DNA of 62,969 nt, the filler included, from Choristocarpus tenellus KU-1152 (lineage: Eukaryota; Protista; Phaeophyceae): NCBI GenBank assembly GCA_964200185.2. It is 9 parts of 9 records of this genome, joined end to end, with 100 filler letters (N's around TTAATTAATTAA, not from the genome) between each part and the next. Parts side by side here need not be neighbours in the genome. Positions count along the whole stretch, not along the records: positions 51,852 to 57,354 come from CAXNAD020010596.1; 8 more parts are not named here. One strand, 5' to 3'. Made by a program: the position numbers and the translations under genes. The number at the start of each line of letters is the position of its first letter. The stretch's first letter is position 1. Positions 2,673 to 57,454 of the stretch are shown here, in pieces. The notes under the pieces were generated by a model, which saw nothing but the letters and a program-made list of their open reading frames with translations, was not told the DNA's origin and did not search any database.

Positions 2673-5600
2673 ATGGATACCCCGTACAAGATGACTGTGG
2701 CAAAACGCAATGCACAGATGTGGGCAGTCTTCTTCCACACTATGGAAACACTAGACCTCGTCACGGTGTGTAAACTTGAAGAAACACCTGTGCCATTCTT
2801 GAGTCACCCCCTCCCTACATTCCCCCCCAGTACACACTTGTATGGATATTACCACCTGTATATTGTTTGATGTACAGCCTGATTAAGATGAAGACAGGTG
2901 CATGTATGCGTGGGTACTCCGTGCAAGTCCTGACCTGATATTCTTCTCCTACAGCAGAGCAGAAAAAAAGTACTCCAGTCATCTATATGAATGAAGTCCA
3001 CCTTGGGTTTCACCCCAGAAATGACTTGTACTCCTGTCGAGGACTGCACATTTGTAGAACTATCAGCTCTCAAGTGCATTTTGTAACAGTACAATTTCTG
3101 ACAATGGCTGACAAGAGCTACCATTGCCATGTCCAGCACCATTTCCTTTACCCTTTCCATGCTTCGGCTACTTTGTCCCTGTTGTTCATCGGAACTGAGG
3201 AAAGTAACACCTAGAGTAGACCATCTCCTCAATCTGTAGTCCTATTATGACATACTCCAGAGTGAATGTTCAACTTTCCAGAGCACCTAAACATGCTGCA
3301 GTTGACCCTCCAGTCCCAACATGACAGTATCATCAGCAACTTCATTTTCTTACTCTTGATTTCTTGCAGGGCGTGGCACTGTTCTTCTACCTTCAGGATC
3401 GGGAGACCATTCGCGATACGGTGCTGTTGCTGTACTGGCTAGCGGTTACAGTGGGGTTGCTTTTGACCTTCTATCGCTTGTACAAGGTGTACCCTGTTCA
3501 TGCCTGTCCGTGACCCCTCAAATACATTAACAGAACATCGTATTTAGCTTCCCTGCCGCCATCCTCATACAGGGGAGGGATGTTGGACCCTTTTTTTGTA
3601 TGTGTATGCATGCCTGCCTACTGCCACACAAGCAAGGATAAGCGCTATATTATTGATGTACTTCAAGGTATTTCTATATACAGGTGGTGGGATGTAGACT
3701 CCTGTCCACTCAGACCTTTGAGCTTGTCTAGGGTTGATACTTAACGTGGTAAGGCACCGCTTTCAATGCTCAAACCATTGCTATTGACAGCTGGAGGTGG
3801 CGTAGTGAGGCACCCTGTCTTAAAGTGGGGATTTTTTGCGTAAATTGGGCTACGGTAACTGCCTTGTGGTACATGTGTGTTTAGCTCGCTGTGGAGTAAT
3901 GTTGCATTTGTGTGGGTAAATGCTTGTCTTTGCTTCTACACCCACAGTCTCCTAACCCTAACCCTATGGGGGTTTTGGCAGAAGGTTTGAAAAGCCCTAA
4001 ATTCTCGAGAGAGCCTAATCTGAAGTATCGGCACAGCTCCTTTTCTTCTCATGGAGGGAGGGTCGTGAGGGTTGATTGTTCAGGAGTCCTGAGTGTTTCT
4101 GGTTATGTGGCTCATATGTTGCGCCATTGGCCATTGGCTATGAACCCAATCAGGAAAGGTAAGAGGGAAGTAGGTCCATCCTGTTCAAAGAAAAGATGGT
4201 TTGTTTATGCAAGAGGGATTTGCTCTTGCCGGGGAGAATGGACACCAGAGGATACAAAAACCAAGACTTGCCTTGGATAAAACTCGGGTGTGACTGCATA
4301 CAACCACCCATGTGTACCGTGCCTCGTACTTTGTACTGCCAAAAAGGGAGGACCACATCAGCCCCTCTCCTCAAAGTCCCTTGTATCTATCCTTTGATAA
4401 GGTTCTGTGGTCACAGTTTTACCTCGAGAGTGTGTCTGTCGAGGAGAAGGTTGATGCTGATGGAAAGCTCACCCTTGTGGTCTACCAGTCGAGCAGCTGC
4501 AGGAAGGGACTAAGGGACATCTCACAAGAGGACGCCATGATGACAACTGAGCTGATCAAGGTCAGTGTTTGCCCTGTCTCATCCCAAGTCACCTCTCCCT
4601 AACCCTACTTATATGACATTCTTCCTCACTAACTTAATTGCCTACTGTAGCATACGAAAATACATTATCAGCACAAAGCAGATAATCATAAGTTGTAAGT
4701 TAGACTTCGGCCATTTGCTATGACACTTTGATTAACACCTATGGTCAGTAGCACAAGCGAAATAATAAGAACCCAAATAGCTAGCGTGAAAGCTCTTTCC
4801 ATCGCCTCCTCCACAAAAAATACTGTACTTGAAAGGGAAACAAGACGGTTTGTCATATCCCAAAGATTGGCAGTATTGCTAATTTGTATGTTAGTGATCT
4901 AATCTACATATTTGTTCAGTCCAACCCCCTACCAAAATAACGATATCTCCCCAAAGTTACACTCCACACCCTGTAGATTGCTGACGGAACCCACCCTGCA
5001 TGTTTGCTTCAAAGACAGATCCTAAAGCACCTTCAGGTCAACAAGTTCAAGGTTCAGTTAGCAGTGGTCATGGACCTCCCTTTGACTTTTTTAAACCTCC
5101 ACATTCTCTGGTTCTACGACTTCGGGCTCATACAGAACCCAATCTTCCTCACCAGCCTGACCATAGCAGTGTTCAGTGCAGGAAAGATTAGCACCCTCAT
5201 TGAGTATCATCTCGAGCTACGGCAGCGGAAGAGGAAGCTGGAGCGTCTCCTTGCGGTAGGTGGCTGTCACATGGTGTAAGTGGTTAATGGAATGGTTTTC
5301 TGATCATGTATCATTTCACCAAATCAAACGGTGAACTCTGTGTACTCTGGGACGTTTTGGATGGGCTAGGGGACAAGCTTAGGTCTGTGTGCTGTAAGCA
5401 TAAGTATTGTTTTGACCCCACTGATCACCCATTCTTCCACCAGTCAACTTCCACTAGGTAATGAGTCATGGCTCAGTTCTTCCTTCTTTCTGCCCAGTCC
5501 CATTGGGTTTTTAACGCACTATAAGAGCCACTGCCTGTTCAGCACAGTGTACAAATTATAGTAATATGGATGTCTTAATGTGGATAGTATACAGGAGCTG

Positions 5601-51671: not shown

Positions 51672-51924
51672 GTAGAAAATAGGAGAGGGTGGTGTGGGTG
51701 TATGTATGTATGTATGTATGTATGTATGTATGTATGTATGTATGTATGTATNNNNNNNNNNNNNNNNNNNNNNNNNNNNNNNNNNNNNNNNNNNNTTAAT
51801 TAATTAANNNNNNNNNNNNNNNNNNNNNNNNNNNNNNNNNNNNNNNNNNNNCCGGATTGGTTTTTTCGGCACCCAAGGAGGGGGGGGGGGGGGGGGGGGG
51901 TAAGGTTTTGAGGCAAGCAGGCAC

Positions 51925-53646
51925 CTTGACAGTGTTGTCCTCAGAAAGGAAGACATTGTCTGGCTTGAGGTCCCGGTGAATTATTGGGCGGTGCCGTCCT
52001 CCCTTACCCAGCCGTCCGTGGCAAGCACCCAGGGCAACAACTGCCTGAGAGAGGAGTCGCCATAAGAACGCCTCTTCCAAGTACTCACTGCTCTCGTGCA
52101 TGGTGAAACATTTACATTGCAAGAAAAGGTCAATATTGACTCTCGTTTGTTGGGGTTTTCATGCTTCTTGGTTCTGTTAGTTTCAGCAGTCATTGCAAAG
52201 GTCGATAGAGGATCAAGTAGTGCAAAGTGCTTAAGCCTGGGGGGGAGTGAGCAGAGAAGATCAGGGGCACACATTTCTATGGGGAGGGGTATGGGATGCA
52301 GGCAAGTAGGTAGGGCAGTGGGCTGAGGTGGGATAAGATCTTTCCCTACTCAACGAATAGTGTTTTTTTCCTGTTCAAGTACAGTCCCCTGTTGTTGATT
52401 ATCACCGATTTTGATTCCCCTTCTCTTCCGTCCATCTCACCCCATTTTTTCACCCTTTGATCACTGGCAGCTGTATATTGATTATGATCAAGAGTTTGTG
52501 GTTTAAAATATAGTTCGAAGTATTCATTCATGTGTTGTGACAGTGAAGGTAATTTAGAGGGTGAACTCAAGTTTTATCACAGAAGAAGGATTTTTGAAAT
52601 CACAATCGTGCAGGTTAATCCTTGGTGCCTCGTATGAAATGTTGGTCAAGAATCGCAAAAGGTGCAACGTCCATGAGGGAGGAGTTGAGGGGGGTTAAGC
52701 GGGAGATGCCCATAGCCCAGCACTACAGCACCTAAATAGCCAGGCAAACCAATAGCACGAGCAGGTGTAAGATTGGGAGGGTCAATAGATATGCTGGACG
52801 ACAGTAGAGAATAATATGAACAGGGGAATGAGGAAGCACCAAATGAGTTCAATTGAATCTTTCTCGCTCACCCACGCTGCCTGCATTTCTTGATGACCTG
52901 ACCAAGATCAGTCCTGCAATATTCCATAACGATGTAAAGCTTGGTCTTCTTCCTGTCAACGATTCTGTCGTAATAGCGGACGATGAATGGATGGCGCAGC
53001 TCTCGAAGGATATTTACCTGTAGTATGCAATGCAATGGTGAGGAGTAGTCGTTATGGTCAGCGAGATGCGAGAAAGTCTGCGTGGTAAGACAAGATTGAG
53101 CTCTAGGATGCAAGGGGAGAGGCTGTAACCGCAAAGGTGTGATTAATGGGCGTGCAATGGATATTAGATATGTATGTATATATATATGAAAGATCATATA
53201 AGAAGCACTGTTGGAACCATTTAAAAGTCCACGAGGCATGTTATGTTCATAAACTGAGCGCCGAACAAGGAGATTTGAAACCTTGACTTTCAAGGGGAGG
53301 CTCCCAACCACGATGACTGGAGGAGGGCGAATAAAAATCTTGCTCCCCATCTGGGGGAGAGGGGGATGCGGTGAAAATGGTGTTGTCGGCAGAGTCTTTA
53401 CCAGAAAAGATGAGAACCAGGCGCCAACGGCCAGCTGGTCAGATTTGCCGGACAGGGGTTAACTCGGGGAGTTATTCGGGGGGAAAGGTTTACCTCCGCA
53501 ACAATTTGCTGCTTCTGCTTCTCATTAGCTGATCCGTAGTTCATTTCCTTCACCACTAGTGCTTTTCCGTCTGACTTCCGTCTTGCCTTCCGGACTACAC
53601 CGAAGCTGCCCCTTCCCAGGGTTTGTAGCAACTCATACTGGTCCAT
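51925..53646 (-). CDS. NEK2: NIMA-related Ser/Thr kinase (Nek2-like), N-terminal part
   Basis: Exons 53646-53494, 53017-52872, 52087-51925: GRGSFG, VVKEM.YG...KQQIVAE|VNILRELRHPFIVRYYDRIVDR..LYIVMEYC, HRDLKPDNVFL..NTVK; ends just before DFG at the linker. Confidence 0.93.
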
Positions 53647-54150
53647 CTCCCCAAAACCTCCACACGGCTCTTCCCCTCAACCCAATAGATCCAAGTTCAC
53701 TAGATGCTGGTGTTTAACGTTCTCACGAGGCGAGGCACCAACACATGCATGCCATACAGACAGGACATTCAAGTGTGTCTATCATCTCCCTCATTCAATT
53801 TCAAAAACATGCGCGCAACGCGCGAGTCAAAGAGAATGGTCAATACCCTATTGATCAGTTCGTCTAGACAAAGAAAGTATTAGAGTCAACAGACCAGACT
53901 GCATCTCTCATGTTTTCTTACACGCTTCGTTGTTGAAAGGAACGCCTACCAAGAAAGAGGGGTTCCTTACAGGTCTCTACAGGGCATTCAAACTGCAATA
54001 CTGTGCTTCTGGATCACAAAGATTTCCTGATTCGGCTTGATTCAAGGGTATTGGAGTCCCTGATACAAGTCCTAACAAGGGTGGTTCCAAATACCAGGTT
54101 GTCGACGGCAGGAGGAACCTGGCTTAAGTCGAAGTCGACAACCGAAGAGT
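53647..54150. promoter_or_regulatory. Putative bidirectional promoter between NEK and bactofilin genes
   Basis: About 500 bp between divergent start codons; CpG-retaining core CATGCGCGCAACGCGCGAG near 53808-53826. Confidence 0.5.
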
Positions 54151-56542
54151 ATGGGTGATATAGAAAAGGGTCTCTCTGCCCTCTTGTCACGGCCTTCAGG
54201 ACAAACAAACTTTACAAATGAGTCCCCCAAGAGAAAACCATCCAAGGCAAGGTTATGGCTCGGAGGTGGTCGGGGTAAGAGTCACGACCATATCGTGGGT
54301 GCAGGATCCATCTTTCAGGTATCATAAAGCAGTTATTCTTCGGTTTGTCGCTTATTCTCGATCTTAGAACGTACCTCTGTTAGTATACCCTGTTTTAGAA
54401 CTGATGTCTGCTTGTGGATCCTACAGGGAAAACTCGAGTTTAATGGCCTACTGCGGGTAGATGGGAGGTTCGAGGGTGTACTTAAACCCTCAGGTAGTTC
54501 AGGCATCTTCGTTGCCAAGTCTGGCATCGTAATGGGAGATTTAGAGGGCTTCAACACTGTTGTGGTGGATGGAAGTGTGTTTGGCAGTATCATCGCACAC
54601 ACCATCGAACTCCGACGGCAATCATACGTGGACGGGTAAGAATCTAGGTACGGGGCGATGGCCTTGATATTAACTGAGATATTAAAACTGTTTCCGTATG
54701 AGCAGGACTGGGATATCGTTGTTCGTCCTGTGCTTGCCAACACTCGTGTTACTACTAACATTTCGATTTGTTAGTCATTGATGTGGTCACGGGCTCGAGA
54801 AGGAAAGCAAGGGCGAGGGTAGAGTAGTGTAGGGCATGGTAGAAGAATGGGTAAAGGTTAGCTGAGATTGCCTTGGCACTGGTGCTGAGCCTTTCAGTGC
54901 AGGATCGAAGGACCTCTCATTTCTACATTCGAATGTTGACCTTTCGGTACCCAACAAAACATTAGAGGGTTATTTTGAAACACTCCTTGTATTCCAACCA
55001 CCACTCCTCTCACACCTATTCCATGGCACCTACTTCTCATACAGGTACCTGACCTGCATGGAGCTAGCAGCTGCTGATGGAGCCGTTTACCGGGGCAAGA
55101 CTGTGGGGGATGGTTCGTTCCTCTCCAGTGATCCTCTCGACACTTCCACCACCGTTGCTGTAAAATGTGCCTCATCCGGGGAGCCTATAATCTATCCAAG
55201 CAGTCTCAAAATGCCTACCAGCGAGATAGAGAAACCTCCATTGGTAACACCCCCCGCATCTGACTCTTTCAAGAATGCGTTCAAGTTACCAGAATCCCCA
55301 TCAACTGCCACCAATTCTGCTGCGCTCCATCCTTCGAAGACAAGAATGGGAGAAGGGAGTGGGGTTGGGGAAGCACCATTTTCGGGGTCAGATAGAGAAA
55401 TACTACATACATGCCCTGTTCTTAAAAAAGAGAGTTTAGGATCATTCGCTGGACTAGAAGATAAATCATCAGGTGGTGGAGGAGAAAGCAGGGCAGGGGT
55501 AGGGGCAGCACCAGACGATGCTTCAAGGGATACGATCCAGAGAGAGGTGAGAATGTGGAATGAAATGAAATCGTTTTATCTCTGGTATTACACGACATAG
55601 TAGAGAAACAACAGGAGGTATTGCAGTATCTTCTATGAGTAAGACATAACCATTCTTTGCAAAGGGCAAAGGTGCTTCATCACCCCATGGTGTTCTCAAC
55701 AGAGTTGGAGACAAGAGTGGTTGGGTTTGGGGATTGGGCAATTGAGTATTGGCAGTTGTCAGGATGGGTTACGTTTTTTTGTGGCAGTTTTGCGAAGGTT
55801 CCAACAGATGCCAAGGTTATGGCAGTGGGTAGGGTCAAGGCGGGGGTTGGGGTTGGGGTTAGGGTTACGGTTAGAGTTGGGGAAGTTGTATAGCTAGTAG
55901 AGCTGTTGTAACTTTCTGGGATTTTTTTGTTAATGGAAGTGCTAGATGTTGAGTGGAGAGGGATTTTTTTTGTCCAGGTTGGTAGGTGAATGCTGTCACA
56001 TGGTGATGGCAGAAGAAGACAGAACCCCCCCCCCCACACACACATGCGCACGCCTGACATTTGCTTCTCTGGCGACTGTAGGTGATAGAGGGTGGTAGAG
56101 GAGTAGGCGTCAATCCCCAATACTTTGCCATCCTTCCCCTGCCCCTCTCCCTGTCAGTCGTGGTTACTATTTCATTGATGATGATAGACACTTCCTTGGG
56201 GAGGTTTCAACTTCGCCCCCCATCATTGGTGGCTGTATCTTCAAAGAGTGCACCGCACCAGCCATTGCCTTGATTTGTTAGCCTTGTGAATGTAATGGTG
56301 TGCTTTGGAATCTGTTCTGGTTGGTGTAGTTGCTGGGATCATGTTGCATTGTTAGTATTGTTGGTGTTGTTAGTAATACCTTTGTCAAGGTTGCTAGAAC
56401 CCCTCCAAAAGCCGTTGGCGTGGGTAGTTCTTTCGCTACCTGTTGTAGAGTAGAGCCAGTTTTTTTATTATCATTGTTGCACCCTCAATCGCATGACAGC
56501 AATCTAATCTACCAATCTCTTCACTTTTCTGCAATGCTGTGC

Positions 56543-56588
<46 letters not shown>

Positions 56589-57261
56589 AGCCCCCCCCCA
56601 CTCCCGAGCTGCCCGCCGGGGGGGAGGGAGGAGTGCGCANNNNNNNNNNTCGCTTAACAGAAATCTAATCTTCCAATCTCTTCCCTTTTCTGCAATGCTG
56701 GCCACCCCCCCCCCCCCCCCCTCCACCCCCCCTACACAATGCATCTATTTCCCCTTGAGCTAAGGACAACAAAACCTTTGAAAGCACTTGTCAGAGGATA
56801 GGGTGGTATTCTTTTCGTTGCATGTGAAAGCTTGCTTCCTGTTAATCTACACCGTTCCCCCCCCCCTGCCCACCTTTGTCTTGTTTGTGCTACGAGACTG
56901 GTGCCCCGTACCCTGTGCTTAGTGAGTACGATGGTTGGGTTTATGTTCCCTTGACCAAGTAGAGACTCTCTTGCATTGCTATCAGTCTCGAGAAGATGGT
57001 TTTCGTTTGTTTTGTCAACATAATTTCAAAGCCAAACCCAGATACAGATACAAGTGCACGACCCCGTGGAGCATGTGCTTTTTGGAAAAATGTTTAATCG
57101 TTTTTTTTTTCTGTTACAAATCTTGAGCAGGCGTCCGCGGTGGATCTCTCTTCTCGGTCGTTGACAAAATCGTTCGACCAGGTGGCTCTGCTGCTAAATT
57201 TTGACGAGGATTTGGCCTTTGAGGAACACCTGCAGACTGAGTACTCAGCAGAGAATTTGTG
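54151..57261 (+). CDS. Bactofilin (polymer-forming cytoskeletal, DUF583) protein with putative C-terminal RGS domain; 3' truncated
   Basis: Exons 54151-54318, 54427-54635, 55045-55546 give HIVGAGSIFQ|GKLEFNGLLRVDGRFEGVL..IFVAKSGIVMGDL..VVVDGSVFGSIIAHTIELRRQSYVDG|YLTCMELAAADGAVYRGK (bactofilin beta-helix). Phase-0 exon 57131-57261 gives SFDQVALLLNFDEDLAFEEHLQTEYSAENL (RGS motif). Confidence 0.8.
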
Positions 57262-57454
57262 GTAGGATGTGTGTGCGTGTGTGGGTGTGGGTGTGTGTGG
57301 GTGTGGGTGTGTGGGTGTGTGGGTGTGTGGGTGTGTGGGTGTGTGGGTGTGTGGNNNNNNNNNNNNNNNNNNNNNNNNNNNNNNNNNNNNNNNNNNNNTT
57401 AATTAATTAANNNNNNNNNNNNNNNNNNNNNNNNNNNNNNNNNNNNNNNNNNNN

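Follow-up and report, generated by a model that had tools for sequence, protein, structure and literature searches.

A bactofilin gene of Choristocarpus tenellus whose third exon may be spliced to the start of an RGS domain

Inspection of a 62,969-nucleotide stretch of DNA from Choristocarpus tenellus KU-1152 (Phaeophyceae; assembly GCA_964200185.2), hereafter called the window, revealed an intron-containing eukaryotic nuclear gene that encodes a bacterial-type bactofilin, the third exon of which ends at a splice donor that most likely joins an exon opening an RGS domain, the G-alpha GTPase-activating (GAP) domain. The analysis was confined to positions 51852-57354 of the window (record CAXNAD020010596.1; the piece), and homology searches were conducted exon by exon, with each exon queried separately. 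Judged from sequence, the bactofilin gene is almost certainly real, and the exon at 57131-57261 is very probably the first exon of an RGS box. That both reside in one protein has, in our estimation, somewhat better than an even chance. The complete proposal, in which a horizontally acquired bacterial filament-former has been fused to a G-alpha GAP domain and switches off G-protein signalling along a nucleotide-independent polymer, we regard as evenly poised between right and wrong. The resulting bactofilin-linker-RGS arrangement would be a domain architecture without match in the papers and protein searches consulted here.

The bactofilin gene occupies the plus strand, and its frame is open through three exons separated by canonical GT-AG introns. 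Exon 1 (54151-54318) contains a start codon in strong context (A at -3, G at +4), an N-terminal tail of about 45 amino acids, and the first bactofilin strand (HIVGAGSIFQ), and it ends at the phase-0 donor CAG/GTATCA, where the slash marks the exon boundary. Following an intron of 108 nt (54319-54426), exon 2 (54427-54635) extends from the acceptor tacag/ to the donor GG/GTAAGA and encodes the core of the beta-helix. The second intron (54636-55044; 409 nt) splits a Gly codon that is completed by the first base of exon 3. This third exon (55045-55546), which begins after the acceptor catacag/, encodes the final bactofilin turn (approximately 55045-55135) and then, with no intervening stop, a disordered linker of 137 amino acids rich in Ser, Gly, Ala, and Pro (52% S+P+G+T+A). 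The exon terminates at the phase-0 donor GAG/GTGAGA after position 55546; if this donor were left unspliced, translation would reach an in-frame TAG (55598-55600) 17 codons later, which is the stop expected of a stand-alone bactofilin. An initial annotation of this DNA had described a three-exon bactofilin followed by a Ser/Pro/Gly-rich linker and the same phase-0 donor, and these features lie where it had placed them. One small correction concerns the boundary between exons 2 and 3, which is 54635/55045 with the split Gly codon and not a phase-0 join. We also considered N-myristoylation of the MGD... start, and rejected this modification because the Asp following Gly mismatches the usual motif.

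Assignment to the bactofilin family is carried by exon 2, which on its own matches the PF04519 profile with an E value of 1.2e-9 and a score of 38.7 bits (gathering cut-off, 27.9 bits), spanning positions 11-78 of 98. The same exon exhibits 37% identity (BLASTP E 3e-9, residues 28-86) to a 151-residue bactofilin encoded on contig L002 from an Arcobacteraceae metagenome-assembled genome, and its top ESM-Atlas clusters are all bactofilin. When compared by eye with the L002 protein, the 10 residues that close exon 1 and the ~30 that open exon 3 extend the beta-helix repeat; exons 1 and 3 alone gave no significant Pfam match, their bactofilin segments being too short to score separately. The identification made in the initial annotation is thus borne out by an above-threshold family match and by a bacterial homologue. 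A phmmer search of the PDB found no bactofilin chain, a single-sequence AlphaFold2 model of exon 2 was too poor for use (mean predicted local distance difference test score of 48.5), and a metagenome scan with exon 2 found nothing. Word-index protein searches with exon 2 and with the exon 3 open reading frame (ORF) were likewise blank, exon 3 yielding no homologues; these searches were restricted to targets of 0.55-1.75x the query length, and their blanks are accordingly weak.

The putative RGS-box exon (57131-57261, plus strand) is preceded by a T-rich tract and a phase-0 CAG/ acceptor, and it ends with the residues EYSAENL followed by TG at the phase-2 donor TG/GTAGGA. Because this segment lacks a Met codon and is preceded 36 nt upstream by an in-frame TAA at 57095, it must, if coding, be an internal exon spliced from an upstream exon; on the same evidence we rejected it as a first coding exon. 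When 1.84 billion representative proteins were scanned in full with HMMER, exactly two relatives emerged, P0001 (49 amino acids, 74% identity) and P0002 (91 amino acids, 71% identity). In these exon-level ORFs, which derive from Logan assemblies, the similarity stops exactly at ENLW. At 71-74% identity over 35 residues, the exon is shared with two other genomes, and 25 of the 44 columns in the three-way alignment are invariant. Scans of metagenomes and genome contigs with the RGS alignment produced no further relatives, and in cluster look-ups P0001, P0002, and the products of the P0002 locus are singletons from Logan. An exact look-up of the window's ORFs gave no match in the protein collection, which apparently does not include this genome. 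A word-index search with the RGS exon ORF, under the same length restriction, was blank and is equally weak, as is a lead from the exon to an RGS cluster in the Atlas (score 0.77). In RGS4, a Ser, a Glu, and an Asn at the start of the RGS box contact switch I of G-alpha. All three are retained in the EYSxENL segment of the window exon, and we take them to be the equivalents of the G-alpha-contacting residues Ser85, Glu87, and Asn88.

Stronger grounds for the RGS assignment come from the locus of P0002, a 7.5-kb contig (L001; run SRR23272292) on which the corresponding exon is 74% identical to the window exon and has the same TG/GT phase-2 donor. The next L001 exon (3782-3896) supplies G and then FWKRAMKY..., completing the RGS signature ENL-W-FW. 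This exon matches the RGS profile PF00615 with an E value of 8.4e-4 and 20.2 bits over positions 30-64 of 117, and a further exon beginning at 5502 (VNISF...) matches positions 67-112 with an E value of 0.011 and 16.5 bits. Each alone falls below the 23.9-bit gathering cut-off; on the profile they occupy neighboring stretches in colinear order, and their separately scored contributions sum to 36.7 bits. The sole PDB match of the VNISF exon is a weak one to GAIP, at the corresponding positions. The Asn of this VN motif, which is presumably the equivalent of RGS4 Asn128, is present in L001, and its counterpart in the window would lie beyond the contig end. We accept 57131-57261 as the first exon of an RGS box because it is orthologous to the L001 exon that precedes these colinear matches, and not on account of a direct match. 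The initial annotation had read a phase-0 exon with the core RGS motif at this position; the exon reads as it was written there, a strong polypyrimidine tract precedes its CAG/ acceptor, two orthologues share its boundary, and the RGS interpretation gains support through orthology. Within the L001 RGS gene, the region 4500-5400, in the 1.6-kb intron between RGS exons 2 and 3, contains repeated units of ~150 nt with near-identical ORF fragments on both strands, a pattern that suggests a transposon remnant or a minisatellite.

Splicing from 55546 to 57131 is the most likely way of connecting the two components, a conclusion that draws on splice phase, on the lack of another upstream exon, and on the parallel structure of L001. 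The exon 3 donor is near-consensus, agrees in phase with the acceptor at 57131, and occurs 54 nt before the frame closes. Because no coding-looking ORF is present on the plus strand in 55600-57130, this donor is the only evident partner for the RGS exon. The layout is shared by the related locus, in which a low-complexity exon (349 amino acids from its ATG, 58% S+P+G+T+A) ends at the phase-0 donor GAG/GTGAGC and is followed, after an intron of ~0.9-1.0 kb, by the phase-0 RGS exon, such that both genes combine a low-complexity exon, a phase-0 GAG/GTGAG donor, an intron, and a phase-0 RGS exon. Both also place a Glu immediately ahead of the junction (Glu/Ala if the L001 acceptor is 2980). Since the end of the bactofilin and the linker occupy one exon without a stop, any transcript from the bactofilin promoter that uses the 55546 donor would encode a fusion. 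The 55546-to-57131 junction, and with it the fusion, is inferred.

Putative intron 3 (55547-57130) measures 1584 nt as assembled and contains no convincing coding ORF. Besides its intron of ~0.9-1.0 kb, the L001 RGS gene contains others of 686 and 1605 nt, and thus a length of 1584 nt is not unusual for this gene. As the initial annotation had cautioned, a 10-N gap interrupts the interval, at 56640-56649. Because the gap falls in non-coding sequence, the reading frame across it is irrelevant; what matters is the adjacency of its two sides, which rests on scaffolding only. An 83-nt unit, consisting of 55 nt plus poly-C, is found on both sides (56489-56571 and 56650-56732; 88% identical, spaced 161 nt apart), a C55 homopolymer follows the left copy at 56545-56599, and the unit with its poly-C is probably the reason that the assembly broke here. 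The interval also holds a degenerate telomere-like repeat (GGGGTTAGGGTT x 3.3) at 55843-55882. An Rfam search of the piece identified no family, returning chance-level matches only.

Several observations weigh against a single fused product, one rival reading being that the locus yields two products, namely a stand-alone bactofilin with a long disordered C-terminal tail, ending at the TAG at 55598-55600, and a separate RGS gene. A tblastn search (E<=10) found no bactofilin in the 7.5 kb of L001, of which 0.9 kb lies upstream of the low-complexity exon, and position 928 offers that exon a plausible ATG, from which the RGS gene appears to start; the ancestral RGS gene may therefore have been free-standing. 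L001, the one relative for which DNA is available, shows no bactofilin-RGS architecture over this length. Bactofilins, those described from stramenopiles included (bioRxiv 10.1101/617639), are normally free-standing proteins with disordered tails. The linker carries in-frame ATGs in good context, for example near 55344, from which a separate RGS transcript could be started within exon 3, and elsewhere the locus is tightly packed, ~500 bp separating its genes. No protein combining both domains turned up in searches that were not systematic for co-occurrence, no relevant paper was found that joins bactofilin (or DUF583) with RGS, and no transcript-derived protein containing the 57131-57261 exon was present among the 1.84 billion proteins. 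The 1.58-kb interval may, in addition, harbor extra small exons. A separate RGS gene could begin in an unrecognized short 5′ exon within 55600-57130, perhaps one that fell into the gap, or could be transcribed from an internal promoter and initiated at an ATG in the linker. Two products are countered by the lack of a coding-looking plus-strand ORF in that interval and by a near-consensus, phase-matched donor that lies just before the stop and resembles the L001 donor in its sequence, its phase, and the residue that precedes it; the internal-promoter version still employs the 55546 donor and requires two overlapping transcription units. We consider two products rather unlikely on balance.

The gap admits another explanation, also adverse to a fusion, in which 56650-57354 and the RGS exon within it derive from a different locus and were placed here by way of the shared repeat and poly-C. 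The RGS exon is indeed separated from the bactofilin exons by a scaffold gap, and beyond the poly-C the flanks are unrelated, a finding at odds with a simple overlap of the contig ends. However, the right contig begins at the first base of the repeat unit whereas the left contig reads through its own copy, a pattern that fits a local tandem duplication (161 nt) broken by a homopolymer better than it fits a dispersed repeat. In strand and in splice phase the RGS exon suits the upstream gene, and the layout parallels that of L001, which together make a misjoin improbable. Doubt might finally attach to the exon itself, as a chance motif or a relic of a decayed RGS gene. The initial annotation had proposed comparison of the protein with the PF04519 and PF00615 profiles; run per exon, this placed bactofilin exon 2 above threshold and gave no Pfam match at E<=10 for the 43-residue exon at 57131-57261, a search of low power given that only ~30 of the 117 RGS positions could be covered. 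Neither single-sequence phmmer nor a profile found a PDB match for this exon, the Atlas lead is the weak one given above, and the rest of the domain lies outside the piece. Set against these points are the conservation described above, the preserved boundary, the intact frame, the strong splice sites, and an orthologous gene that holds a recognizable RGS domain, and we judge a non-functional exon to be very improbable. A bactofilin-RGS protein thus remains the reading that we develop below.

Considered by itself, the bactofilin gene is a new member of an already published kind, as bactofilins have been described in Stramenopiles and Ascomycetes (Deng et al. 2019, bioRxiv 10.1101/617639). They are known from few eukaryotic lineages only, and their cellular role there is unknown (bioRxiv 10.1101/617639). 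The Phytophthora infestans representative PiBac (UniProt D0N980) forms filaments, and, like bacterial bactofilins, these assemble end to end and are non-polar and nucleotide-independent (bioRxiv 10.1101/617639). By description, and not by sequence comparison, the C. tenellus protein resembles PiBac and the Ectocarpus protein D7G0L1 in having a nuclear-encoded eukaryotic PF04519 domain flanked by disordered tails. Those proteins are described without a signalling domain, whereas here the exon encoding the tail ends in a donor that probably leads to RGS.

RGS proteins are ubiquitous in eukaryotes. With canonical members (RGS4, GAIP/RGS19; PF00615) the window exon shares the F..xL..EYSxENL-x-FW start of the RGS box, and the L001 orthologue adds the VN motif with its catalytically important Asn, colinear with the Pfam profile. 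The window gene is nevertheless very divergent from them: single exons fall below the Pfam threshold, nothing matches in the PDB by sequence, and ~30 of 117 domain positions are represented in the window. A bactofilin as the N-terminal partner of an RGS domain would be new. The nearest functional analogy is with Axin, in which an RGS-homology domain and a polymerizing DIX domain occur in one polypeptide. The likeness lies in the pairing of an RGS-type domain with a self-polymerizing one, which places signalling regulation on a polymer; however, DIX forms a head-to-tail ubiquitin-like polymer with no homology to the bactofilin beta-helix, and the RGS domain of Axin binds APC and has no G-alpha GAP role. 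Bacteria offer a second precedent in Caulobacter, where the bactofilin BacA acts as a scaffold that recruits PbpC as its client. This case and that of L002 resemble the architecture proposed here in using a filament as a localization platform for an enzyme, but the bacterial client is a separate protein encoded nearby, whereas in C. tenellus a eukaryote-specific signalling domain would be the client, attached through a covalent link. On L002, which encodes the closest bacterial bactofilin found, the bactofilin ORF (4920-5372) overlaps the end of an upstream ORF (4102-4977) in which M23/LytM peptidase motifs are visible by eye, and the two resemble the arrangement, classic in bacteria, of a bactofilin gene beside one for a cell-wall hydrolase.

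If the two components are indeed joined, the protein would begin with a bactofilin beta-helix and continue, with no exon boundary in between, through a disordered linker of ~140 amino acids, after which the phase-0 acceptor at 57131 would open the RGS domain, its remaining exons lying past the contig end. The bactofilin domain would be expected to polymerize end to end into non-polar, nucleotide-independent filaments, from which RGS domains could be displayed on flexible linkers of ~140 amino acids. GAP activity toward G-alpha-GTP might in this way be concentrated along a filament or membrane patch, and heterotrimeric G-protein signalling would then be shut off with high avidity at spatially fixed sites. 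Beyond the domain assignments, this mechanism is inference throughout. Were it correct, it would provide a first functional hint for eukaryotic bactofilins, as a scaffold for the regulation of heterotrimeric G proteins, and would clearly exemplify how a cytoskeletal module from bacteria was wired into eukaryote-specific signalling after gene transfer. It would also add a polymer-tethered type to the known modes of RGS protein localization. If the two are instead separate neighboring genes, the locus would be an ordinary one, in which a stramenopile-type bactofilin sits beside a divergent RGS gene.

At the right edge of the piece, the intron that follows the RGS exon begins at 57262 and is occupied up to the contig end (57354) by a (GTGTGTGG)n microsatellite, and the remainder of the RGS domain falls outside the piece, as the initial annotation had warned. 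The microsatellite comprises (GTGTGTGG)x11 at 57269-57354, and a long G homopolymer (51880-51901) is located near the start of the contig, such that both ends coincide with low-complexity sequence. On the minus strand, 51857-53646 encodes a NEK2-like Ser/Thr kinase with at least three exons, which continues off the left end of the piece. Three ORF pieces match Pkinase in colinear order (profile positions 1-52, 48-90, and 87-139), and human NEK2 provides the best matches for the first exon in the PDB (E 5e-14). The kinase start codon (53646) faces that of the bactofilin (54151) at a distance of ~500 bp, and in this divergent arrangement the two genes may share a promoter region.

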